Shown here: positions 24,769 to 64,000 of the stretch, in pieces
Layout of the letters: every line of letters begins with the position of its first letter
How positions within the stretch are numbered: position 1 is the first letter of the stretch
Source: Syncephalis fuscata S228
Lineage: Eukaryota > Fungi > Zoopagomycota
Assembly: GCA_025786725.1 (NCBI GenBank)
Contig: JAHLTZ010000015.1
Location: 372,001 to 436,000, forward strand
Length of the DNA stretch: 64,000 nt
Direction of reading: 5' to 3'
The notes under the pieces: generated by a model
Told to the model about the DNA's origin: nothing
Seen by the model: only the letters and a program-made list of their open reading frames with translations
The model's database searches: none
Position numbers and translations under genes: made by a program

Positions 24769-25824
24769 ATGAATCCAAATACTTTATCATTAGCCTCCGC
24801 TGCACTTATCGTGCTTGCATGCATATCCTCTAATGCTCAATTGGCACAGGCTATGCCCAATTATCCAACTTATCCAGATTATGGTGGCTATCCAGTATCT
24901 TATCCTCCAGTAACTACTACTGGTGCAGCCTCCTATCCTCCGGTAACTACTACTGGTGCAGCTTCCTATCCTCCAGTAACTACTACTAGTGCAGCTTCAT
25001 ATCCTCCAGTAATCACTACTAGTGTAGAACCATATCCTCCAGTAACTACTACTGATGCAGCTTCCTATCCTCCAGTAACTACTACTGGCGCAACCTCCTA
25101 TCCTCCAGTAACTACTACTGGTGCAGCTTCATATCCTCCAGTAATCACTACTAGTGCAGCTTCCTATCCTCCGGTAACTACTACTGGTGCAGCTTCCTAT
25201 CCTCCAGTAATCACTACTAGTGCAGCTTCCTATCCTCCGGTAACTACTACTGGTGCAGCTTCCTATCCTCCAGTAACTACTACTGGTGCAGCTTCATATC
25301 CTCCAGTAACTACTACTGGTGCAGCTTCCTATCCTCCAGTAACTACTACTGGTGCAGCCTCCTATCCTCCGGTAACTACTACTGGTGCAGCTTCCTATCC
25401 TCCAGTAACTACTACTAGTGCAGCTTCATATCCTCCAGTAATCACTACTAGTGTAGAACCATATCCTCCAGTAACTACTACTGATGCAGCTTCCTATCCT
25501 CCAGTAACTACTACTGATGCAGCTTCCTATCCTCCAGTAACTACTACTAGTGCAGCTTCATATCCTCCAGTAGTCACTACTAGTGTAGAACCATATCCTC
25601 CAGTAACTACTACTGATGCAGCTTCCTATCCTCCAGTAACTACTACTGGCGCAACCTCCTATCCTCCAGTAACTACTACTGGTGCAGCTTCATATCCTCC
25701 AGTAACTACTACTGGTGCAGCTTCCTATCCTCCAGTAACTACTGCTAGTACAACTTCCTATCCTCAGCCCACCAAATACTCAGCTTCTCGTTCTCCAGTA
25801 AACGCTTACCAAGCTCAATATTAA
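24769..25824 (+). CDS. Secreted Pro/Thr/Tyr-rich mucin/extensin-like protein with about 26 x 11-aa repeats (SYPPVTTTGAA)
   Basis: Signal peptide MNPNTLSLASAALIVLACISSNAQLAQA; 33-bp tandem repeat; upstream TATA (ctatataaac near 24640); no introns. Confidence 0.85.
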   Translation: MNPNTLSLASAALIVLACISSNAQLAQAMPNYPTYPDYGGYPVSYPPVTTTGAASYPPVTTTGAASYPPVTTTSAASYPPVITTSVEPYPPVTTTDAASYPPVTTTGATSYPPVTTTGAASYPPVITTSAASYPPVTTTGAASYPPVITTSAASYPPVTTTGAASYPPVTTTGAASYPPVTTTGAASYPPVTTTGAASYPPVTTTGAASYPPVTTTSAASYPPVITTSVEPYPPVTTTDAASYPPVTTTDAASYPPVTTTSAASYPPVVTTSVEPYPPVTTTDAASYPPVTTTGATSYPPVTTTGAASYPPVTTTGAASYPPVTTASTTSYPQPTKYSASRSPVNAYQAQY

Positions 25825-26344: not shown

Positions 26345-28096
26345 TTTTATTATTTTAAAAGCAACATAAAAACTAGGATAACTTTTAAAAAATAAATGTA
26401 TTAAAAATCTTATTGTACTACACTTATAAGTTAAATTTTAATTACAATTTTTAAGGCGAAAAATAAATGTATGAATTACTAAAATAAACATATACATAAT
26501 GGAATGTACAATGACTCAGATCCTCGTCATCCAGGCGCCACCTATACAGTTCCTTCCCCCAGACTCTATTTACCCAACTAAATGTTAATAGCTGGCTCTT
26601 ACCAGTGTCATAAAAAAACTTATGCTTTAGTTTCAAGTCACTATTGATACGGGGGATCATCTTTATAAATGTGTACGCGTTCTATTTGAAATTTGATGCA
26701 CCGTTTATTGTACGCTCTTTTGGTCGATTCAGATATCTACTAAGCATACTTTAGTTTTTAAAATAAACGCTCACTTAAAGTAAAAAAATACTGTGCTTAT
26801 ATTTTTAATAATGTTATTACATTGCATTACACTAAAAACTATTTCTATATTATATCCACATCTTAATGTATAATAATATAAACATATGTTATAATTTCTA
26901 TGGATAATGTATAACACTACATTGTTATCTATATTTAATTGTCTACTGTTATACTAGTGCAGCCACTGTAACATTTAAAAAATACTATACCCGGTGCATG
27001 CACGTATCCTTAAGGTACTTATGTGCCCAAAACAATTCAGTATTAATGGCTGTTTCAAGCAAATACTAATAATGTGATTGCGAAACACGCTAAAACACCA
27101 AGAATAATGCAATTTAGAGTTGTGTTTAGCGCTGTAGCTTTTAAAATGTAATGCATGGCTATATAGTTGGATTGCTGTTTTAAATATTAGTATCGACTAT
27201 TAATATACATAAAAAGAAGCAATTTTACAACATAATATTAAAAAACTGCCAGTTTATATTACCAATCTAATGGTCCTAAGCAACAAGCATTGCATAATTC
27301 AAGTCATAGGCGGTAGTGCATTATTACATTCGTTATTAGTTTGTTATACACTTTCTTCATTGGTTGACAGATAGATGGCGCTATAGATAGGCTTGTTTTA
27401 TTTGCCATGAATATAGAAACCCCCCATTTAAACCAATAAAAAACTAGTTGATTATTTATAACTTGGCATTTTTTAATTCAAGCCCTTTCATAGCATGTGG
27501 AATACGAAAAACATCAATGATGATATAGGAATATTACATAAAATAGCCAATCAAATAATAGGGACACTTGTGAAACAGGCCTTATTTTTTGAACTGGAAG
27601 CTCTAGTGTAGTTTTAGCCCCTTATTCTAGGAAATGACAGTCATAGCATTGCATACTTTACTATTAACCAAAAGAAACATTATTATAGAATTTAGACAAA
27701 GATATTAGTATATTGAATACTTTTAAAAAGCCTAGTTGTCTTAAAAGCAGCATAAAAACTAAAATCACTATTAACGAATAAAAGCATTAATATTCAATAT
27801 TTGTTATAGATGTTATTGTATCACATATATAAGCCAAATTTAATTACAAAATTTGAAACAAGCGATACGATGCACGAGTTGCTAAAACCAAATTTCATGT
27901 TTGCTAATGTGAATAGATAGCTGTAAATAAACAGGTTTAGTTTAATTTATGAAATTCATTTATATCGGCTATATAAACCCAGATCTTCGGTATCTTTTTA
28001 AATTATTATATGCAATAGCTTCTCATCCAAGCACACTAGCAAGATCTAGACCAGTTTTTAATCATCTCTTACCACATTTAGTTGAGCTTCAGCAAA

Positions 28097-29731
28097 ATGA
28101 ATCTAGGCATTTTATCGTTAGCTTCCATTGCACTTATCGTGCTTGCATGCATATCCTCTAATGCTCAATTGGCACAGGCTATGCCCAATTATCCAACTTA
28201 TCCAGATTATGGCGACTACCCTTCAACTTATCCGGATTCTGGCGATTATCCTTTAACTTATCCAGATTCTGGCGACTATCCAACTTATCCGGATTCTGGC
28301 GACTATCCAACTTATCCAGATTATGGCGACTATCCAGTATCTTATCCTCCAGTAATCACTACTAGTGTAGAACCATATCCTCCGGTAATCACTAGTGTAA
28401 AATCATTTCCTCCGGTAATCACCACTGGTACAACCTCTTATCCTCCTGTCGCCACCACTCGCATAACTTTATATCCTCCAGTCACCACCACTCGCAAAAT
28501 CACCACTACTAGTGCAACTTCTTCCCCTCCTTTCACTACCACTCGCAGAATCACCATCACTCGTACATTCACCAACACCCGCACAGCTTCTCCTCCTCCA
28601 GTCACCACTACTAGTGTAGCTTCTCCTCCTCGCATTACCACTCGCACAATTACTAATACTCGTACATTTACCAACACCCGCACAGCTTCGCCTCCTCCAG
28701 TCACCACTACTAGTGTAACTTCTTCTCCCCCTGTCATCACTTCTATTACAACTTCTTCTCCAGTCACCACTACTAGTGTAACTTTTTCTCCTCCTCGCAT
28801 TACCACTCGCACAATCACCAACACCCGTACAATCACCAACACTCGTACATTTACCAACACCCGCACAGCTTCGCCTCCTCCAGTCACCACTACTAGTGTA
28901 ACTTCTTTTCCCCCTATCATCACTTCTATTACAACTTCTTCTCCAGTCACCACTACTAGTGTAGCTTCTTCTCCTCGCATTACCACTCGCACAATCACCA
29001 ACACCCGTACAATCACCAACACTCATACATTTACCAATACCCACACAGCTTCGCCTCCTCCAGTCACCACTACTAGTGTAACTTCTTTTCCCCCTATCAT
29101 CACTTCTATTACAACTTCTTCTCCAGTCACCACTACTAGTGTAGCTTCTTCTCCTCGCATTACCACTCGCACAATCACCAACACCCGTACAATCACCAAC
29201 ACTCATACATTTACCAATACCCACACAGCTTCGCCTCCTCCAGTCACCACTACTAGTGTAACTTCTTTTCCCCCTGTCATCACTTCTATTACAACTTCTT
29301 CTCCAGTCACCACTACTAGTGTAGCTTCTTCTCCTCGCATTACCACTCGCACAATCACCAACACCCGTACAATCACCAACACTCATACATTTACCAATAC
29401 CCACACAGCTTCGCCTCCTCCAGTCACCACTACTAGTGTAACTTCTTTTCCCCCTGTCATCACTTCTATTACAACTTCTTCTCCAGTCACCACTACTAGT
29501 GTAACTTCTTTTCCCCCTATCATCACTTCTATTACAACTTCTTTTCCTCCAGTCACCACTACTAGTGTAACTTCTTCTCCTCGCATTACCACTCGCACAA
29601 TCACCAACACCCGTACAATCACCAACACTCATACATTTACCAATACCCACACAGCTTTTCTTACTCCAGTTACCACCACTTTCATGGTTTTTGATGTCCC
29701 AGCCCCCACACACCTAGCTTTTCTTTCTTGA
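28097..29731 (+). CDS. Paralogous secreted Thr/Pro/Ser-rich repeat protein (YPDxGDY repeats, then 60-aa higher-order repeats)
   Basis: Near-identical signal peptide and MPNYPTYPDYG start to the 24769 gene; 180-bp periodicity across 28861-29460; homologous promoter region. Confidence 0.85.
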   Translation: MNLGILSLASIALIVLACISSNAQLAQAMPNYPTYPDYGDYPSTYPDSGDYPLTYPDSGDYPTYPDSGDYPTYPDYGDYPVSYPPVITTSVEPYPPVITSVKSFPPVITTGTTSYPPVATTRITLYPPVTTTRKITTTSATSSPPFTTTRRITITRTFTNTRTASPPPVTTTSVASPPRITTRTITNTRTFTNTRTASPPPVTTTSVTSSPPVITSITTSSPVTTTSVTFSPPRITTRTITNTRTITNTRTFTNTRTASPPPVTTTSVTSFPPIITSITTSSPVTTTSVASSPRITTRTITNTRTITNTHTFTNTHTASPPPVTTTSVTSFPPIITSITTSSPVTTTSVASSPRITTRTITNTRTITNTHTFTNTHTASPPPVTTTSVTSFPPVITSITTSSPVTTTSVASSPRITTRTITNTRTITNTHTFTNTHTASPPPVTTTSVTSFPPVITSITTSSPVTTTSVTSFPPIITSITTSFPPVTTTSVTSSPRITTRTITNTRTITNTHTFTNTHTAFLTPVTTTFMVFDVPAPTHLAFLS

Positions 29732-35569: not shown

Positions 35570-37775
35570 TTAATTAGGCAGTCGGTCTCGTAGCCATTGC
35601 ATAATTTCATCGGTACCTCGTTGGATAACATCGCGTCGTGGTAAACGAAGAGCATTTCCCTCAATCGACAAATGTTTGATGGTTTCACACCGGCCTAATT
35701 CAAATGGCAGCGATTGGAGGTCGTTATCAGCAAGATCAAGTGCGTGTAAACCGTAACAGCCTTGTACGTCCAATTCGGTCAAATGATTGCCGCGCAGTTG
35801 TAATGTTTGTAGACGTGGCACCAGCAAACTATTGGGTGTTCGGCCAGTCAAACGATTATGGCTAAGGTTAAGAATGGTCACTTGAGGAAAGACACGAGAG
35901 GCAGCAGCCGCATCTGGAAACTGGGTAATCTGATTACGCGATAGATCAAGTTGTCGCAAATTATACATTGGTGCTAATGAAGCATCAGAGGGGAATTTAG
36001 TTAATCGATTGTGCGTCAGCGATAGCGAGGTAAGTGTCGACGCAAATTGTGAAGCAAGTGCTGGAAAGCTAGTAAACAGGTTATAGTTAAGCACTAGACT
36101 AACTGGCTCGAATGGCAATGGTGGAAGAATGGGGGCACGTGCTGGGTCATCATCAGATAGTTGAAGCCGTATAAGTTTTAGTGTATGTGACACCATGTCG
36201 GGGGGACTAATATCGATTTCAACATTAGGTGGACCGGAAGGAATAACTGGTTTAGTGACCACAGGTACTGCAGCTTCTTCTTTTACAGCTACAGGTGGGG
36301 TAGGTGTTGATTCAGTGGCTTTTTGATTGGTTACTGGTGTTGGATTATCATCTACAATAGTTACACGAGTAGTGGCTTCTACTATTGTTTCAACTTCATT
36401 GCCTGCGGTGGATTGGTGGGCCGATGGAGTCGGAAGTGAGGCCGGTTCTCGAGGTGCAATAACTGGCGGTGAGTTTTCCTCTAATGCAATAGTTAGTACA
36501 AAGTGGAAAGTAACACAGTTAAGGCCACTTACCTCCTTCAGAGATTCTATCGCGTAATCGTTCGAGTATTGCTTGAGCACCTGAAGCACGTGGTAGAACA
36601 CGAATTGGATTACCATCGAAAAGAAACGATTTCAGCGTTTCTAGCAAGCCAAGATGCGGTGGTAAATTAATAAACTCATTGGATGAGATATCCAACCGAT
36701 TAAGCACAGATAGTTTAAAAATACCGGCTGGCCATTCACTAAATAGATTCTGGTGTATATCCAACGTTAAAAGCTTGTGTGTTGTAATGAGTATATCGTC
36801 AATATGATATAGTCGGTTGGCAGATAGAAACAATTCTTGTAATTCTGGTAGTTCGATTGGTGCTGCTGCATCGGGTCTAGTTAAACTAGTTAAGCGGTTT
36901 CGACGTAGATCAAGATGCTGTAGTCTGGCAAACTGTAGTGGCTGGCCATTCGATACGTCAAAGGCTGCGGTAAGCTGATTAACGCTTACGTTAAGTACTC
37001 GAAGCGAATTAGCATTGGTTAAACTGTAAGGCAATGGTGTTTTCAATTGATTATTATTCGCTTGAAGATGCGTAAGCTTGTACAGTTTGCCGATAGCTTC
37101 AGGCAATGCTTGGAATCGGTTATGGCTTATATTTAGAACTTGCAACGATTGTAATTTTCCTAAATAATCATTATCTAACATCTCGAGTTCGTTGTTTTGC
37201 AGATCAAGATTTACTAATGGCAGAGAGTAGACTTCAGCGGGCAATTCTCGTAACTTGTTATTTGCCAAATTGATGTAGGTCAGGTTTTTCAATTGGCCAA
37301 TAGAAGCTGGTAGCAATTGAATACGATTGTTATGAAGCTAAGTTACATTTAGTATTGTGTAATGTCATTCACCTTATACTTACATCCAAATGTACTAGCG
37401 TTATAAAATTGCCTATTTTTTCATCAACTGATTCGAGCTCGTTATCGGCTGCGTTTATCGTTTCGAGGTCAACGACATCCCACCAGTTATTATTTGTGCT
37501 TTTACTAAGGTCCACTTGACTTTGTTCTTGACTGGCACTTGGGTCGTGCATATTCCACACAGTATCAGGAATAGTTGTTAGGCCACGATTAGAAATATTG
37601 AGCTTGCCTAATAAATATAATGTTTATCAACAGTGCTAAGCATTTGAATTCAGCGCTACGAACCTGTTTGGCGCGCTTGTTCAATAATACGCGGATGGAC
37701 ATGGCCTGCAACATTATCAACTTGTGCACCGCCAAATGCACCTTGATTGCCGGCTTGTTGTCTAAAACGCGACAT
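35570..37775 (-). CDS. Leucine-rich repeat protein, LRRC40-like; 4 exons
   Basis: IEQARQTG/KLNISNRGLTTIP, NWWDVVDL, many LxxLxLxxNxL repeats, C-terminus GNALRLPRRDVIQRGTDEIMQWLRDRLP. Confidence 0.85.
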
Positions 37776-44689: not shown

Positions 44690-45739
44690 TGAAGACAACA
44701 GTAAAAGCACAAAGATGCATCGTCATTGCCTTCGTAGAACCCATAAATTTAGTCTGCGTTGTATGGTTGAATCATGCACAGCATAGTAAAGAATAGTACA
44801 CGGATTTCTACCATAGATGTACCGAATAATTGAAATTGCCGCGTTCTTTGTTCAAATGACAAACAGGTTGAATTAAAAATACAGCAACGGGCCTCATCAT
44901 TTTCGTAGAACCAATGAATTCTGTTTGCGTCATATGGTCGAGCTGGGGATTAATTTTTCGGTGAAAGCAATAACAAAACACAAAGACGTACCATCATTGC
45001 TTTCGTAGAACCAATGGACTCGGTTTGTGTTGCATGGTCAAATCATGCACAGCACAGTAACAACTAGCATGTGGATTTTTTACCATAAATTTATTGGATG
45101 ATTGAGATTGCCGCGTTCTTTGTTCAAAAACCAAACAGGTTGAATTAAAAATACGGCAATGGGCCTCATTCTTTTTGTAGAACCAATGGATTTAGTTTGT
45201 GTCATATGGTCGAGCTGGGGATTGATTTTTTGGTGAAGGCAATAACAAAGCACAAAGACGTATCATCACTGCTTCTGTAGGACCCATAGATTTAGCCTGC
45301 GTTGCAACCCATAAATTCAGTTTGGGTTGCATGGTCAAATCATGCACAGACAGTAAAGAATAGTACACGGATTTCTACCATAGATGTACCGGATGATTGA
45401 GATTGCCGCGTTCTTTGTTCAAATGACAAACAGGTTGAATTAAAAATACGGCAATGGGCCTCATTCTTTTTGTAGAACCAATGGATTTAGTTTGTGTCAT
45501 ATGGTCGAGCTGGGGATTGATTTTTGGTGAAAGCAATAACAAAGCACAAAGGCATATCATCACTGCTTCTGTAGGACCCATAGATTTAGCCTGCGTTGCA
45601 ACCCATAGATTTAGCCTGCGTTGCATGGTCAAGTCATGCACAGTACAGTAAAGGCAAGTACACGGATTTCTACCATAGATGTACCGGATGATTGAGATTG
45701 CCGCGTTCTTTGTTCAAATGACAAACAGGTTGAATTAAA
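44690..45739. repeat. Tandem repeat, about 4 units of 270-295 bp with internal sub-repeats
   Basis: Anchor attgccgcgttctttgttcaaa recurs near 44835, 45107, 45402 and 45697. Confidence 0.9.
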
Positions 45740-46104
45740 GGCTTGGTTGCACATTAGCATGTCATTAGTACATTGATATACGCATACTTCAAATCATCAT
45801 GTGAATACCTTTGAAGACTACCGTTGCATGTATAGAATGCACACTACAGCTATTCATCCATGCCTGCTAAATCGTCATATTAATGTATTTTATTGGTTTA
45901 CACTGTATTCAATGGTATATTCAATAGAATACACTGCTGGTGCTTCACAATAAATTTAATATAAATAGCCCACAAAATACACACAACTAACTAGCAGTAT
46001 CATCATCACATTCTGCTTTCTGCCAAATACTCACTCTACCTACTTTGCACCAAACATACTCTGTCGTTCACTCTACTTGTTTGTCTTAACAAATCAATCT
46101 CACC

Positions 46105-47469
46105 ATGAAGCTTTCTATTGCCGTCGTCTGCACCGTCTCGTGGCCCTTGTAGCCAGTACAGCCATGGTGGATGCTAAGCCAACTTTGGTTCGTCGTGGTA
46201 TGTTGTAGTCATAATAAATTTGATATGTTTACTAACACTATGTTCAACCAACGATGGTATTAGCTGGTAAGTTGTGATTAGGGATCATTGTTCCAGTGCT
46301 TACCGTATGTTATACAAATAATGGACATGGCAAATAGTTGGTAAGTGTTGATTGCACATAGTTATTGGCACAATAATTAATTGTTGTTTTTAATGTAAAA
46401 TAAATAAAATAGCACCATTGGCTAAAAGTAGGTTTAATATAAAACAAAATTATATTGCTGATACTAATATTGCCTATCTATACTAATAGGAGGTAAATAG
46501 CAATAAGAATAACTAATTAATTATGCACTAAATATATATCGCACATTTTGTATTTAATAACTTGTATTAATAGCTCGTAAGTGACATTGTACATTTATTA
46601 ATTATACACTAAATATATACTGTGCACTTTGGTGTTTGATAACTCGTATTAATAGTTGGTAAGTGGTATTGTATACCAATTAACTACGCACTAAACATAT
46701 ATCATTAATCGTGTATGGTTGGTGACTGTATTAATAGATCGTAAGTGGTATTGTATATTAATTGACTATACATTAAACATATACCATACATTTTGTATTT
46801 GATGAATTGTATCAATAGGCCGTAAGTAGTATTGTATACTAATTGACTATACACTAAATATATACCGTGCACTTTATGTGTTTAATGACTTGTATTAATA
46901 GGTGGTAAGTAGTATTGTATATTAATTGACTATGCACTAAATATATACCGTACATTTTGTATTTGATCCCTTGTATTAATAGGCCGTAAGTAGTATTGTA
47001 TACTAATTGATTATACACTAAATATATACCGTGCCTTTTGTATTTGATCCTTTGTATTGATAGCTCGTAAGTGGTACTATATTAATTAACTATAGGCTAA
47101 TTATATACCGTACATTTTGTATTTGATCCCTTGTATTGATAGGCCGTAAGTAGTATTGTATATTGGTTGACTATACACTAAATATATACCATGCACTTTA
47201 TGTGTTTAATGACTTGTATTAATAGCTGGTAGGTGGTATTGTATATTAATTGACTATGCACTAAACATATACCGCACATTTTGTATTTAATAACTTGTAT
47301 TAACAGCTAGTAAGTGCTATTATATATTAATTGTCTATGCGCTAAATATATACCGTGCACTTTGTGTGTTTGATGACTTGTATTAATAGCCAGTAAGTAG
47401 AGTTATATAATGTTAACTTATACGCTAATCGCATAATATTTTATATATGTATCGGCACTGATAGTATAA
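46105..47469 (+). CDS. Micro-exon gene (17 exons, 14 of 3 nt) encoding a 51-aa secreted precursor with Kex2-type dibasic sites
   Basis: Exon 1 46105-46197. Then CTG 46264, TTG 46338, 15 nt 46413-46427, GAG 46490, CTC 46574, TTG 46656, ATC 46738, GCC 46819, GTG 46902, GCC 46983, CTC 47064, GCC 47143, CTG 47226, CTA 47307, CCA 47390, and TATAA 47465. Each internal exon is flanked by YAG and GTA(A/G). Splices to ...VDAKPTLVRRAVAPLAKRALDRRGPRPATI*. The signal peptide needs one base restored near 46135. Confidence 0.85.
46490..47398 (+). repeat. Tandem array of about 11 intron+micro-exon units, period 79-84 bp
   Basis: Consensus gtaagtRgtattgtata...cactaaatatataccg...ttgtattaatag-NNN. Confidence 0.92.
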
Positions 47470-49469
47470 TTGGACTGCAAGTTATATATATTTTAGGTAT
47501 ATATTCGGCAAGAATCAAGATCATTTGACAACTACGCCATTCAGTCCATTCATATATCAAGTTCCATCCAATGCCCCGGTTTATTCAACCCTTAATCGAT
47601 GGACTCCTTATATTGCCAACATGTTTCTATTTTTCTGTACATGCTCAGCTATGCAGACTTAGTAATAAACATATGGTTTCATTTTAATTATGTTTGATTA
47701 AGCTATTATAGCTGTGTTTATATTCTATTTGCTTACAAAGACTAACATTAATTGATTAAATATATTGACAATAAACTTGTACAAATGCGCTATGTTAGTG
47801 AACAATGTAAACTAAAGTAATTGTAATAGCATTATTATTCAAATAGCAATTAGTATGTAGTCATTATTACTGAATAAAGTCGTCATTTGATTAACACAAA
47901 ACCACTACTAAATTACTGCTTATTCACGAACGATATAGATTGTATATAACAGCGTTACTATATCATTTGACTTGAATGTATGCAATGTTGTGAAATAGAT
48001 ACTGTATCATTGAACATTGTATAATTGGCACTTTTATGCTATTGGCTATAATGTTATTCAATTTAGCTAGTTAAACAATTGTATATTAAATGGACTGAGT
48101 GTGCGTACTAGTCAATGATACTGCTAGAGACAAAGGATATTAAGTGGAAAGGAAGCAAGATGGATGAAAATGAACAGTGAATGTCATTGGAATGAATGAA
48201 CAACGCAAGTAGTCGAATATCACTAATCAATATGCTGTAATTAAGTATAAGAAAACGAAATATTACATTGTAACTTTAATAACACTTTTACTTTTGTAAA
48301 TAAATTCTACTGAAATGCAAATGTTAATAATTAAAACAATTTTATATTATTTATCAGCTCAAATAAAAAGTAGACAAATGACTTGTAGGCTTGTATTGCT
48401 ACTATAAAACTCATGATATATTGTGTAAGAACATAGAAAACTGCTACAATGAAATGCAAATAGCCATTTTAGCTGCACATGACTAGTTGTTTGTTCATTT
48501 TTGAATTCAATAGGTTTTATTATGCTTTATACCTCAATAAGCTAATTATTTATTTACCAGCAGAATTAAAACAACATGGCTTTATCAACAATTTACAACA
48601 TCGGACCTAGACAACCATATATAATTCTACAATTATCCAGTACGTAATAAACAGATATTTTTATACATACTCGATTTACTTCATAATGATATTGAATTGC
48701 TATAGATGAATCTATCTTATACATGCTTATTCTATTACTTTGCACGTACTTTATGAATAGATACAATTATCATATTAATCCGATCTATCCCAGCCACTAT
48801 GATAGTATTGTATATCTTTGTTGATATCATTAACAAAATACTAGCAGTATCAGTTATATGTTGACATAAAAGCACTACTACCATATAACAACTCATGGAT
48901 CCTGATAATGACTAGTCTATTCATACAATACTTTTATTTCTCTAATTCTTTATTCATTTCCCTCCCTTGTATATTCATTCTATTATATATCGTTCTATCC
49001 TGTACTGACCACACTCTATTTAAAACTACGTTTGTATAATTCTAGCCTTATTTGCTATAAACTTTGACTCATGTCGCTCATTGAGCCATATAAATTATAG
49101 CTTCTTTTATTCATTCATTCCGTTCTATGCTATCCTATGCCTCACCAACTATTAATTATTAATAAAGGCTGTTTCTTTGTCATTAGTCATATTCTTTGTA
49201 GAATTCAACATGGTCCACTTAAATATAGTATACTTTATTATTAATAGCTATACTTTCTTTAATTATTCGCTTAACTATATATTGTTTTATTTTTCGCAAA
49301 ATAAAATGTGAGTCTCTAATAATGATTATAAAGCATACCATAAATAAATATCAAACACAATCTATTTAATTATACAAATTATAAAAAAAGAATACAACAA
49401 CAAAGTTTAATAAAGGCGTCTTTTTCCATATTAACGATAGTTCTACACGTCAGGATAAACCATCTTCTA

Positions 49470-52400
49470 ATGACCGAACAGCGTTGGCCCGATAGTAATC
49501 CTCCATTCCACGTCGGTATCATTGTTGATACGTCGATAGACGACGAGAAACGATACCGTCGGTCTCTTTCACTACTGGCTCGTCTTGAAAGTTCGGGAAA
49601 ACCGCCCGAGCCAGAGGAATTAACCGAGTTTGCCGAAGCATTGCAAGTGGTTAAAGACACAGCAAAGCGGGGCAAGATTATTACTGAAGATGTTATACCA
49701 CTCTGTGTTTGGTGGTTATCGTTAGACTCAGTCGCACTATGGTGGCTATCGATATTTGAACAAGAAGCGGAAAGTTTAACGGCTGTTGGTAAGTTAATGG
49801 AACCAAATATGTATTTAGTATATTAAGTATAATCGATAGCGTTAAAGAAGGGATTTATTCATTTACAAAGCCTTATTACTGAACTTGCCGATACTAGTTT
49901 ATCTGAGATTGCTATTACAGCTATTCGCTGTGCTCACAAACTAGTACCGCACGCCTTTCTACGCTGGTAAGTTATTACAATACATATTGATGTTATAGTT
50001 ATTTATGTATTTATATTTAGTTGTGTGGCAGATGATGATGACGGCAAACTATGGCATATTGTACATCAAGTCTATGAGTCAGTTAAATTACGTGTACGTT
50101 CTCGGAACCCACAGATGCAACTTGTAGCCATACGGTTTATTACACTATTTGCACAAATATTTACACAGCGACTTACAAATCCTAGAGTAAGTCGAGTGTT
50201 GCATTAACAATAATAATAATACAAATTAACTATTGATGAATCAATATTAAAGATGCGTCGCTATCCACATGATGTATCAATTGCTCTTTACAAAGGTGGT
50301 AATCAAGGATTTAAAACGGCCAAGTGTGAACAATATGCAGAAACGATATTAGATGAATTACTGGCATTTATATGTGATCCTGGCGTGTAAGTATAGTCGA
50401 TGAGTAGCTATAGATGACAATTATCTTATTATTGATTATTAGTACTTATCCAACGGGTATTATTAATTGTGTATTTATCTATGCACGTTCACGTTGGAAA
50501 CATGCTGTTGCGGCAATTGAAAGTCTTTTACATATCTGTAAAAATATGCCCATTCACTGGTCTACAATGCAGCGTCGATGTGTTAGAAGAACAATTCTGG
50601 CAGGATTTAGCACGTTATTTCGGTATGGATCATAAAGTATTCAATATATACCTAATCACTTACATTGCCCTATTTAGATATGCAGTTTCAAGATCCGATA
50701 GAAAAACACGAGACTTTATATTAAAAGCGATTGAGGAGATTGAGGAGACAGCTCTTGTAAAAACACTTATACTATGGGAGGAAGGCAAACGACGTGGGCA
50801 CGCCTATCCAAGTACGTATAATATGAATAGATAACTTTTCTTTAATGTTTATATACACCATTGAACAGGCTCGAATGAAGCAACTACCGCTGAAATGACA
50901 TTAAACGGCGATTCTATTACGAGTAAAAATGAACGAATAGGTATTGGATCACGATCAGGCCGAGTAAACGCCACGGGGAATAATCGAGCCTTTGGTAATC
51001 GTGAGCCAAGTAACCTGATATTTGTAAATAAGCGAGATCCTCGACGTAAAGATGGCCGATTCTACGGTCGCTTGCATGTAGTCGATCCTTTTAAACAAAA
51101 GGGAAAAAGAAAGAAGCCTAAAGATAAAAAGGCAACGCTTGATGAAGATACGCTTAAACCATCTGAATCTAGCAATTCTATAGCTGAATCAATTCCCGAA
51201 ACACCCAGACCAATCATTGGCATGTCCTATGATCATTGCATTTTATTTATGAAGAGTACTATTGATCGGATTCTATATGGCCGACTTGTATCACTAATTG
51301 TGCCATCACATCTCAATTGGCGGGTGGCACTTGATCGATGCGCTGCCTTTCTCATAAGCCGAGGCGAAGAAAGTGACGAGGCACTAGCTTTGGTGAACAA
51401 CGAGGAGGATCTTGATATAGCACGTACCCATCTGGCTCAGTTTTTTGCTAGTGGATTTAATGATTGGTAGGTTGATTAGTAATCAATAATAGCTATTGAT
51501 ATATCAATGCTTTATATTTAGGCACCAGCATGCTTTATACTGGCTATATCTAGAGTGGTATGAAGATAAAGAGGTAATTGCTAGAGAGAGAGAGAGAGCT
51601 GACTATTAAGTGTTAATAAGCTATGAATTAACTAGGCTTATAATCAATCATTATGCCTGCAATTAAAACTATTGTTTGAAAATGAGACATTCTCAGAAAT
51701 TGTTGTTGGACAATTTATTCTAGGTATTCCAGAACTAACTAATGATGCTGGATATTTACTGCAAACATTCTGTAATAATATAAATTGGTAGGATTGTATT
51801 AGGTAACATTAAGTGTATTAATTAGAGCTATTAAATAGGTGTTATATGATATTGCAATGTCTACGCCGATGGTCATTAACTCAAGGAAACTCAATGTCGG
51901 TAGCATTCCGTCAGTTTTGGATACTTAGTATACAGCAAGGTAAAATTACATATTAAATTATGTTTATTATGCAGCATAACCAATTAATATTCTACACAGA
52001 TACTGATGAAATCCGGTTTGATGTCAATCGTGAGATTACACGTTGTATAGAGCGTAATCCACGTGCTATAATAGAAGCAAAACAGTTAGCTGAACTTGGT
52101 CTAAAAGCCATGACCAACAATGAAAATAGCATATTAATTGACTGGATAAAAGAATTAGAAAATAGATCAGAAAAGACAATGTTATTTGCTGAATCAAATG
52201 ATGAGCAAAAGCTAGATATAAAGGATAATAGAGAAGATAGAGAACAGAAGATGGTAAAACACTTTTTAGATATTATATTTCGTACTATGACACGGCGAGT
52301 CAATATTATTACACCGTATGTAATGAACACCTTTCCTACGATTTACACTGATCACTATACAATTTAATATCATTAGACTACTTCAGCACTATGCAAACTA

Positions 52401-53510
52401 TTCAATACGAACACAAATGGCCATTAAGGCCGGTATTATAGAAACAGTATTAGAGATTGGTCAATCGTGTACAGAATTAATATCGACTCTTTGTGAAGCG
52501 CCAAAAGATGCCAATGACTTGGTAGCATGGATTATTCGACTATTTGTTTCGGATGGTAAGTGCTAGAGGGTGAATACTAATGTTATTGGGCATTAAGTAT
52601 TTATTATAATTATAACTAATAGGTCGTCCGAGTCAAGAGTTGCGTAATGCTATTCTTGATATGGAAGCAAGAGAAGTCGAAGGGGCAGCCATTATCTCCT
52701 GGATGTTAGTAACGGCAGTTGATCATGTAAGATTTATTTGATACAATGAAATGAATAAAATACTTGAATCTAATGAATCTGATCATAGCATCACATTGAA
52801 TCAGCCGTATTAAAAGTACTAGGTGCAGCTAATAGTATGGATCAACTGCCTAGTATGATACATTCTATGATATTTTGGCTTGAGCGAGATTTAAATATTA
52901 AATCAAGTGATTTATTTTTAATGACTATTAAGAATACTTCTCGACAGAATGCAAAGCGAATTGGCAAAGGTAATTTTTAAACAAAATTGAGTAATTAATC
53001 AATTAATTAGTTATTATTATTATCAGTGATTGATCAATTTATTCTTATGTCTGATATATTTGATCGAAGTGTTATTCAAAATTCTCTAACCCGAGCTTAT
53101 AATATTCGGCAACCACCTGTGCTATTAATGCGTGCCGTAAGTATAACAATAGCATTTGATTACATTATTTATTCATTTAATTAATATTTTATTTTAGACT
53201 ATGCAGATTATGCGTGCCTATCCAGAAATGCTTGATGTTTCCCTTGATTTAATGGATTCACTTATCCAACGACCAGTTTGGGAAGTACCACAATTTGAAT
53301 CAGGCTTTATTAGATTTGTTAAAGTAAGTGATGATTTACTTATAATGGTTGTATTAACTCTAATACAATACAATACAATATAATACTTAGATGTGTCAAC
53401 CACGATCATTAAAATTGCTAAAAAGATTATCAATTAGCCGTAGAAATAGATTGCTTGAAGAACACTCTGACCTGAAAACTGCTTATTTGTTTAATGAACG
53501 TCTCTCATAA
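49470..53510 (+). CDS. Divergent symplekin/Pta1-like protein, many introns
   Basis: C-terminal PVLLMRA/TMQIMRAYPEM...LIQRPVWEVPQFESGFIRFVK/MCQPRS resembles the symplekin C-domain; HEAT-like N-terminal exons; consistent GT-AG junctions. Confidence 0.6.
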
Positions 53511-53713
53511 CTATATATATACGCACATACACATACATAATTCTAATGGATCGGCATTGAAGCATTAATAAATACCATAGCATGACGTCATTAGCTAAAA
53601 CAAGCACAGTGTAACTTAAAGTGGTGTCTTATCTATTTGGCTTTTCTCCGTCCTTCGTATTTGCCAGTCTCTTTATTTTACGCTCTCTTCACTTATCTGT
53701 ATTACTGTCTACC

Positions 53714-54482
53714 ATGGAATCACGTACCGTTGTAGTTGCTTTAAATGACTCACCCGTTACACTCTACGCTCTAAATTGGGCTCTTTCTCATGTGTTTCGT
53801 GTCTCAGATGACACTTTACAATTGCTTCATGTTGTCAAATTACCTGAAGAGCAGTCAGAAAATAGCGATTACTGCATTATAGGTACCTATTTCAGTGCTA
53901 TTAGTATTTTATATTCTATTAAGAGTATATAGTGCTGCTGTTGTCAATGATGCTAATAATACAAATGAATAGCAACACCTAGGCCACCAGCCGCATCAAA
54001 GCGTACCTCGCTACAACGATCCACTGTCCAAGGCTATGAGATCATTCAACGTGGCGAGTCTGTCGTTAAAGCAGCATTTCCAGACACCACTGTAAGTATT
54101 GTATAAGTACCTTTTTCTTTTACTATATCATTATTATAGATCAACTATAAAACGGAAATTGTTTACAATAATAGTATAGTCAATGGAATATTGGATTTTG
54201 TTCACAATCCACAGCAGACATCAATTCTTGTACTAGGGAAAAAGGAACTACCGTATGTATATGAGTGAGACGCAGCTATTAGAGGTCAGCTAATGAAATA
54301 GGCTAATGAATAGACACGATACACAGTCATCATTTACACAACAACAAAATACAATCAAGTTTTGTGTTCATAATGCGCACTGTCCAGGTAAATAATTCAT
54401 TTGATACTTAAACTATACAAAGTAATAATTTTCGTTTTTACTATTCTTCATAGTTGTTGTAGTACGCGAGCAAAAGAAATAA
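53714..54482 (+). CDS. Universal stress protein (USP) family, multi-exon
   Basis: MESRTVVVALNDSPVTLYALNWAL...LQLLHVV; C-terminus FCVHNAHCP/VVVVR. Confidence 0.8.
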
Positions 54483-54504
54483 GTTTTATTTTATTGCATC
54501 AACA

Positions 54505-55032
54505 CTATTGTTTGTATCGAAGAATATCAAATGCAGTGAATGTACATTCTTCAATCTCTTTTTCTTTATATTCAGTACTTGTCACTTGCGATTCTGGACT
54601 GCCTTTGTTTCTAAACCAAATTTTCCTTTTTAATTAACATACCGGGATATTAGTATTAGTAGTATGTGCAAGTAGTTTATATCTTTATACACAATGTATA
54701 TATTGATATGATACTTACATTGTGTGGATCTTGTCGGCTGGTCCTTGTGCTACGCCTTCTACCGTACCATAAGCTTATCAATATTATTATTAATAAATAA
54801 ATTTTATTAGTTTAGTGTTAGTATTAGTGTTATTAGCTTTACTAAGTCCATTGTCGTCTTTTAATACTTACGTGTATTGCGTATCCAACCTACTAGACCA
54901 AGTGTACTGGCGCGGTTAGCCGTGTATCTACGATAATAGACACCTTGTATAGTAAAGTATAATAAGCGACAAATAGTTGTAGTCATTCAACTCAACTGAA
55001 CTGCATACCTTGTACGCGACCAAATATTTCAT
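54505..55032 (-). CDS. Acylphosphatase-like protein; the N-terminal phosphate loop looks damaged
   Basis: YRRYTANRASTLGLVGWIRNT, GTVEGVAQGP, GSPESQVTSTEY...FTAFDI. Confidence 0.7.
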
Positions 55033-63596: not shown

Positions 63597-64000
63597 CTAA
63601 AGAACATGTTGATTGGGTGCAAGACAAGCTTGCTCCCATCCTTGTAATACGCGAACAATACGATTATTAACACGCAATTGCTCGACGCCATCAACAGCCT
63701 GCACAAACGTTGATGGTTCATAGACACCAACAACAATTCGACGAATCCACGGTGTTGCGAGTAAGCGCTGTGTGCAGCTTGGCTTACCAGAAAGACGATG
63801 CACACATGGCTCCATAGTTGTATACATGGTAATAAAACTTGAACCATCAGTTGTAACGGATGCTAATGCTATTTTGTCGACTATATCGGATGATAGCTTT
63901 AATAAACAGCATTCCTCAGCGTGCGTATTACCAGGCAATTCACGTGAATAGCCTGTGGATACTATTGTCATAGAGTATTTATCTTTTTCCAACTGGCACG
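63597..64000 (-). CDS. Cytidine-deaminase-fold riboflavin biosynthesis deaminase (Rib2-type domain); 5' end outside the window
   Basis: STGYSRELPGNTHAEEC and YTTMEPCVHRLSGKPSC zinc motifs; VVGVYEP. Confidence 0.85.
   Translation of the reverse strand, partial: CQLEKDKYSMTIVSTGYSRELPGNTHAEECCLLKLSSDIVDKIALASVTTDGSSFITMYTTMEPCVHRLSGKPSCTQRLLATPWIRRIVVGVYEPSTFVQAVDGVEQLRVNNRIVRVLQGWEQACLAPNQHVL

Follow-up and report, generated by a model that had tools for sequence, protein, structure and literature searches.

A putative secreted-peptide gene family of Syncephalis fuscata with tandem arrays of 3-nt exons

The micro-exon locus and its surroundings

The analyzed stretch of DNA, referred to as the window, comprises 64,000 nucleotides and was assigned to Syncephalis fuscata by its glutamate synthase, which is 100% identical to the protein of this species. 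Its positions 45300-55000 match contig JAHLTZ010000015.1 (GCA_025786725.1) exactly. S. fuscata is placed in the Zoopagomycota and is a mycoparasite, living as a haustorial parasite on other fungi. The public annotation contains no gene at the micro-exon locus. At the syntenic place of S. plumigaleata no ortholog was found; symplekin and aldehyde dehydrogenase are adjacent there with no room between them. A scan of the rest of the 64-kb window revealed no second micro-exon array. Among the further content of the window are two Thr/Pro/Ser-rich ORFs (24769-25824 and 28082-29731) built from 33-bp and 180-bp coding repeats; they have no Pfam match, and our guess is that they might encode mucin-like surface proteins. 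A leucine-rich-repeat gene on the minus strand (35570-37316) consists of two overlapping ORFs, owing to an intron or a break. A deaminase ORF (63597-63992, minus strand), with Inv-AAD (AID/APOBEC-like) as best Pfam match, is also found in S. plumigaleata.

The features of the micro-exon gene are as follows, with L003, L124 and L126 denoting paralogous array genes.

44704..45739, no strand assigned: 272/295-bp tandem repeat upstream of the gene
45960..45967, + strand: TATA-like box TATAAATA, in a region conserved in 4/4 array genes and absent from intronless copies
46101-46107, + strand: CACCATG start context
46105..46197, + strand: coding part of exon 1, predicted signal peptide and first pro-segment ending in RR; 93 nt here
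about 46134..46137, + strand: one-base break, one base fewer than in 6/6 paralogs
46264..46266, + strand: 3-nt exon 2, pro-spacer
46338..46340, + strand: 3-nt exon 3, pro-spacer
46413..46427, + strand: 15-nt exon, pro-spacer up to K; 14/15 identical in L003, with a 21-nt counterpart in L126
46490..46492, + strand: 3-nt exon supplying, with its first two bases, the rest of the R codon of the KR site; starts with GA in the window, L003 and L126
46512..47400, + strand: 81-bp tandem array of 10.9 copies with one intron and one 3-nt exon per unit; coding for the variable mature peptide
46574, 46656, 46738, 46819, 46902, 46983, 47064, 47143, 47226, 47307 and 47390, + strand: starts of the 3-nt exons of the array
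47465..47690 (end approximate), + strand: last exon with two coding bases, the stop codon at 47467-47469 and the family-conserved 3' UTR
47664..47669, + strand: AATAAA, invariant in 6/6 family members aligned

A base-by-base check confirmed the 16 GT-AG introns (62-81 nt) between fourteen 3-nt exons and one 15-nt exon that had been proposed in the original prediction. The donors are GTAAGT (12), GTAGGT (2), GTATGT (1) and GTAAAT (1), the acceptors TAG (15) and CAG (1). Read in phase 1, the joined exons reproduce the predicted chain of 20 residues with its clean stop, the TAA at 47467-47469, and the three elements said to frame the gene (a TATA-like box at about 45960, the caccATG start and an AATAAA at about 47664) were all located. 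In total, 15 of the 17 exons measure 3 or 15 nt and account for the whole coding sequence past the exon-1 leader, exon 1 by length still being the larger part of the coding region in this short copy. The exons have a GC content of 64% vs 27% for the introns. The motif YAG-NNN-GTAAGT occurs 12 times in 6 kb vs 0.04 expected (maximum of one in 300 Markov resamples); 11 of these units lie within the 81-bp tandem repeat and are thus not independent, so that their count alone proves little. An Rfam search gave no credible match, none coming near the gathering score. NACHT and ankyrin domains were not found in the gene, its exons being too short to hold them and exon 1 lacking a Pfam match.

Paralogous genes and the state of the window copy

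The family was searched with the exon-1 frame alone and then with the database protein found by it, resulting in five S. fuscata models and a sixth from a cluster look-up. All models obtained from the protein searches were S. fuscata ones derived from the genome, and none spans an array. Against 1.84 billion representatives, phmmer gave no match for the exon-1 frame. Pfam yielded nothing for exon 1, P0121 and P0123, and the PDB nothing for P0121 and P0123. Three of the paralogs are array genes with 16 (L003), 38 (L124) and 29 (L126) 3-nt exons, next to the 14 of the window, a series of codon-sized exons being a trait of the nank type of Tuber. L003 is located on the same contig as the window gene, about 95 kb away and inverted. 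Promoter region, exon 1 and 3' UTR are common to all four, while each has its own array. The 272/295-bp repeat is also present upstream of L003 and L126, having been duplicated together with the gene; its copy at L003 contains a 54-codon gene model. With 94 nt (L003), 97 nt (L124) and 94 nt (L126), the first exons of the paralogs are all intact and in phase 1, which confirms the predicted frame. The frames were checked by translating the exons as defined by their coordinates, with the exon-1 break of the window kept unfilled and one 2-nt exon of L124 read as X. Apart from this 2-nt exon, the chains of the three paralogs are open in phase 1 and stop where the last exon starts or shortly upstream of it; the last exon behaves as UTR with indels between paralogs. 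Public gene models misread all three beyond their first exons.

A SINE-like element of ~390 bp, whose tRNA-like head contains A and B boxes and whose tail is A-rich, is found in L003 (11253-11569), L124 (9505-9869 and 11100-11488) and L126 (8746-9150). ARAGORN recognized no tRNA in it. Its identical position within array introns of the three paralogs suggests a target preference, and insertion there with a 16-bp target duplication in L126 means that retroposition is active.

Of the predicted dibasic sites, only two are conserved: the RR ending exon 1, kept in 4/4 array genes, and the KR that follows the short spacer, kept in 3/4, with its R each time completed by a first array exon that starts with GA. 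The internal RR is peculiar to the window copy, which leaves the proposed separate peptide GPRPATI uncertain. Beyond the KR, the peptides of the array genes are unrelated to each other: the predicted mature peptide has 12 residues and is Arg/Pro-rich in the window, about 13 and Gly/Phe-rich in L003, and 28 and Ala/Asn/Ser-rich in L126; that of L124 is about 40 residues long and contains six Cys at even spacing. Judged by motif, the intact paralogs have a putative signal peptide with a hydrophobic core and an A-x-A-type end, which is broken in the window copy. The core of the original prediction, a fungal secreted and dibasic-processed peptide gene of phase-1 3-nt exons, is supported by these three intact array paralogs and by three intronless copies in the same frame, with secretion and Kex2-type cleavage remaining predictions from motifs.

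The original prediction had restored one base in exon 1, and the intact paralogs indeed are one base longer at about 46134-46137. As assembled, the frame from the ATG at 46105 runs into an in-frame stop at 46150-46152; a second ATG, at 46164, shares the frame of the chain but has most of the signal peptide ahead of it. The public GCA_025786725.1 record, being identical to the window at this locus, provides no independent check of the break. Exon 1 matches L003 at all 93 aligned bases, also at synonymous sites, against a difference of 12% in introns 1 and 2. Consequently, the break must be of very recent date if it is not an assembly error, and we assign about even odds to the window copy being a very recent pseudogene or an assembly artifact. 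The chance that the family is real but this copy dead, with a genomic break that limits its output to 15 codons or, from the second ATG, to 31 residues that would not be secreted, falls only a little short of one half. Besides the in-frame stop at 46150, it is favored by a nearby 6.3-kb glutamate synthase gene without any such break, by further damaged members of the family, and by the loss of the last acceptor shared by L003, L124 and L126, in place of which the window uses an AG ~35 nt downstream, with the stop at the same offset after it. Next to the mismatch-free exon 1, the 32/32 intact splice sites, the intact chain and the occurrence of one-base losses in 3/7 family members, two of them in base runs, argue against it. 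One-base losses in base runs are typical of long-read consensus errors.

Three members of the family are intronless and retrocopy-like, located near three contig ends with the same neighbours:

L125, 7065-7325
L127, 4211-4470
L128, 7568-7830

The identity shared with the array genes breaks off where exon 1 has its donor site, and from there the frame runs on to a TAA; in L125 it continues for 54 triplets and the TAA lies ahead of the homologous 3' UTR. L127 carries a one-base break. The homology begins ~140 nt before the ATG, just past the TATA position, and stops ~20 nt past the AATAAA, followed by an A-rich stretch, and the upstream region common to the array genes is missing. The products are Cys- and Pro-rich and gave no Pfam or PDB match. 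From these sequences, the copies look like retrocopies of spliced mRNA that were later duplicated with their neighbours near contig ends; an intronless ancestor instead of retrocopying stays a formal alternative for their origin. In the micro-exon register, 42 of the 54 triplets of L125 belong to the family vocabulary vs 31.7 +/- 4.1 (maximum 39) in control genes, lending weak support to an array origin, to which codon bias may contribute. The parent array gene was not found. Adjoining the intronless copy in L125 (about 3945-2700, minus strand), as well as in L127 and L128, is another paralog in decay, which has lost its start codon and accumulated numerous C>T and G>A changes.

Based on the retrocopy-like copies and on the Tuber precedent, we infer that splicing of the arrays would be complete or near-complete. 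A different use of the same structure, with transcripts keeping subsets of micro-exons so that one gene gives a peptide library and alternative splicing is the main diversifier, has been reported for Tuber nank (PMC4986451, PMC13449251); for the present family we consider it possible, but rather doubtful. All exons are symmetric. No triplet of the window ends in T, so that 0/91 skip pairs make a stop, and on paper the 4096 skip combinations of its last 12 exons result in 2,280 distinct C-terminal peptides with no premature stop. In L124, by contrast, 61/703 skip pairs give stops. Moreover, full-inclusion chains read as coherent peptides, as in the six evenly spaced Cys of L124, and up to 54 triplets after exon 1 in an intronless copy suggest near-complete inclusion.

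With respect to function, hypervariability and lifestyle make an outward-acting role on host fungi or bacteria (as effector, antimicrobial or recognition ligand) the most likely one, with a probability somewhat above one half. It is improbable that the peptides are intraspecific, pheromone- or hormone-like signals rather than weapons or host-directed effectors. Signal peptide, dibasic sites and short products do resemble alpha-factor-type precursors of the KEP literature, but repeated identical cores are missing and the mature parts, 12 to 40 residues long, are unrelated among paralogs, which an arms race fits better.

Triplet variation and arrays beyond Syncephalis

Within the 81-bp repeat of the window, the columns of the three exon positions belong to the most variable ones, with a pairwise diversity of 0.51-0.71 as compared with 0-0.3 for most intron columns, and the AG and GT(A)nGT columns flanking the triplets show zero variation. 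YAG and GT are kept in 77/77 array units scored in S. fuscata. Unit pairs of L124 with a flank divergence of 3% reach 69% in the triplets, which is close to random. Divergence between nearest units, flank vs triplet, amounts to 12% vs 36% in the window, 13% vs 50% in L003 and 8% vs 40% in L126. A satellite drifting neutrally cannot produce this pattern of fast triplets and conserved flanks. It can arise either by diversifying selection on new triplets or by a homogenisation of the introns that is purged wherever it changes the peptide. Both of them require coding triplets. Stop avoidance in the four S. fuscata arrays is a weak signal (one stop, the terminal one of L124, vs 3.6 expected). Gene anatomy, frame, family and selection on the triplets are shown by the sequences, and we judge the micro-exon structure of the window to be real and coding.

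A generic pattern of three consecutive 3-nt exons was searched in metagenomes, 185,579 prokaryote genomes and viral contigs. At least 120 metagenome stretches match, and variable arrays, defined by at least 6 units and at least 4 different triplets, account for 46/120 among the metagenome matches listed. The prokaryote genomes gave 39 matches, mostly cyanobacterial CRISPR-type repeats and none of them variable (0/39); viral contigs gave no match. In 44/46 variable arrays with at least 8 exons (a set that includes L003) among the matches listed, the triplet is more diverse than both flanks. Stops in phase 0 number 1 vs 23.9 expected across 29 metagenome arrays (516 exons), those in phase 1 59 vs 56; within 14 low-GC metagenome arrays, phase 1 contains 0 vs 11.2 expected. 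Where kinase, NLR and HET loci were checked, the large exon that follows is open in the stop-avoiding phase. Seven further loci (L022, L039, L065, L071, L075, L104 and L107) are tandem repeats in which phases 1 and 2 are open; their triplet being mostly TAA, they were set aside as non-coding mimics.

These data bear on two readings of the window to which we give hardly any credence. One is a non-coding minisatellite whose unit holds splice-like words by chance: the locus is a tandem repeat, and CRISPR arrays and simple satellites match the generic pattern too. However, such mimics have invariant triplets, as reflected by the 0/39 and 46/120 variable loci, five further exons of the window lie outside the repeat, and triplet hypervariability, GC contrast, the conserved coding leader and the intronless copies would be left unexplained. 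For a CRISPR array or non-coding satellite, the variation is likewise misplaced, as it sits in the 3 nt between AG and GT, opposite to the CRISPR mimics. The other, a phase-0 reading from an ATG at 46171 as hydrophobic membrane protein, draws on 84 open codons after exon 1 and on a window exon 1 divisible by three, but exon 1 is in phase 1 in all intact paralogs, the frame goes on in that phase in the intronless copies, the last exon is UTR-like with paralog indels, and the hydrophobic look is expected from shifted codons ending in T or C.

The metagenome arrays are hosted by several gene classes and share no DNA similarity with the S. fuscata pieces (120 loci compared). NACHT-ankyrin NLR genes were found at five loci (L031, L089, L116, L118, L120) and HET-domain genes, with the arrays upstream of the HET domain, at three (L015, L018, L100), in both cases among the matches listed. 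L031 (5245-7830), which as far as can be told lies outside Tuber, has two arrays of codon-sized exons between its ankyrin repeats. A cluster of 14 low-GC loci, which we take to be Glomeromycotina-like, places phase-1 arrays upstream of protein kinase domains (L004, L010, L082 and others; WNGF/WNFZ/WNGA contigs). Several of these kinase-gene arrays read as Tyr/Asp/Trp/Gly-rich segments recalling antibody loops. Eight loci (L007, L009, L020, L057, L060, L087, L095, L102) are P-loop GTPase-like by a weak Pfam match, with up to 38 exons after the GTPase-like domain. An array of 59 micro-exons is present at L017. In five small, putatively secreted precursors (L016, L050, L032, L045, L063), exon 1, with a predicted signal peptide in the first four, has its end exactly at KR or R, and the array starts the mature peptide, in phase 0. 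As these loci have no DNA similarity to the S. fuscata gene, the design is convergent or very old.

It is conceivable, though still tentative, that codon-sized exon arrays form a general, portable and mostly unannotated fungal diversification module, used for secreted peptides in at least two lineages and for the variable parts of NLR, HET, kinase and GTPase proteins. Each such gene would be a peptide library, changed by unit turnover from one generation to the next and by combinatorial exon skipping inside a single cell, and might serve fungal recognition and attack like the hypervariable loops in animal immunity. The scan suggests that a mechanism so far tied to truffle NLRs is widespread and resides in nonself-recognition genes, which bears on the origin of fungal recognition diversity. 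The chains of 14-59 consecutive 3-nt exons also probe how the spliceosome handles exons too short for their own definition. Since a simple genomic pattern detects the arrays, the claim can be checked on existing genomes and long-read data.

Proposed mechanism and relation to known systems

Taken together, the window gene is very probably a member of an S. fuscata pre-pro-peptide family with a mature peptide encoded by tandem micro-exons. In this model, exon 1 would supply an ER signal peptide and a pro-segment ending in RR, a few micro-exons a short spacer ending in KR, and an array whose units of about 80 nt comprise an intron and a 3-nt exon would spell the mature peptide. The spliceosome would take out the introns one by one. 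With all introns in phase 1, a codon would combine one base from one exon with two from the next, so that skipping an exon also alters the neighbouring residue. Cleavage of the Kex2 type after RR and KR would free one variable peptide of 12-40 residues. Gain or loss of a unit would add or remove one residue with no frameshift, and exon skipping may contribute further variants. Intron sequence would be homogenised across units while selection acts on the triplets, giving near-identical leaders and unrelated peptides among paralogs. As nearly all residues of the mature peptide come from 3-nt exons in a tandem repeat, very fast peptide change is possible. If spliced as proposed, the peptides are invisible to gene finders, and the array genes of S. 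fuscata hint at a hidden class of fast-evolving fungal secreted peptides, candidate mycoparasite effectors or antimicrobials.

Among known systems, the original prediction had pointed to KEPs, which are defined by highly repeated cores between Kex2 sites (PMC7329392). KR/RR sites in a small fungal precursor are shared with them, as would be the ER signal peptide, judged by motif. The S. fuscata precursors, unlike KEPs, would release one non-repeated variable peptide, the repeat being in the introns and not in the protein. As the segments between the dibasic sites are mutually unrelated and have no repeated cores, the family is not KEP, which corrects the original prediction on this point.

The micro-exon genes (MEGs) of Schistosoma have exons of mostly 6-81 nt (commonly 15) and introns of 0.1-5 kb and are reported to be flatworm-restricted (PMC4350168, bioRxiv 2023.06.21.545858). 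They have in common with the S. fuscata genes that the coding region lies mostly in symmetric exons of very small size, that paralog families evolve fast in a parasite and that transposon insertions lie nearby; a signal peptide, judged by motif in S. fuscata, would be a further shared trait. The S. fuscata genes differ in their 3-nt exons, in introns of about 80 nt (62-81 nt in the window, far from the long introns of MEGs) that are tandem-repeat units, in the dibasic pro-region and in their fungal origin. Homology to Schistosoma MEGs was neither found nor expected.

In Coprinopsis cinerea, fungal spliceosomes were found to include exons of 1-3 nt, long reads revealing 27 three-nt exons in 26 genes (PMC12230235). 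These are about one per gene, in contrast to the consecutive arrays of 14-59 considered here.

A fungal precedent is provided by the NACHT-ANK (nank) genes of Tuber melanosporum, which are reported to have tens of codon-sized exons that are alternatively spliced (PMC4986451, PMC13449251, PMC10197012, PMC3689799); a 2026 paper (PMC13449251) still treats the case as a lineage-specific strategy. The statement of the original prediction that it knew of no fungal case made almost wholly of 3-nt exons is softened by Tuber, yet it holds for secreted peptides in the literature we covered. There, among papers mostly open without subscription, we found no report of an array-encoded fungal secreted peptide or of arrays in kinase (including arbuscular mycorrhizal), GTPase or HET genes. 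Both systems are fungal and use tens of 3-nt exons for diversifying a protein segment, and L031 displays the nank layout directly. In Tuber, the segment modified by the arrays is the sensor region of a large receptor inside the cell, whereas those of S. fuscata make up the whole mature part of a small, putatively secreted peptide, are in phase 1 with split codons and occur in another phylum. The S. fuscata family therefore belongs neither to the Schistosoma MEGs nor to Tuber nank: codon-sized arrays as such are already known from Tuber, while their secreted-peptide form and their breadth across fungal genes look undescribed.
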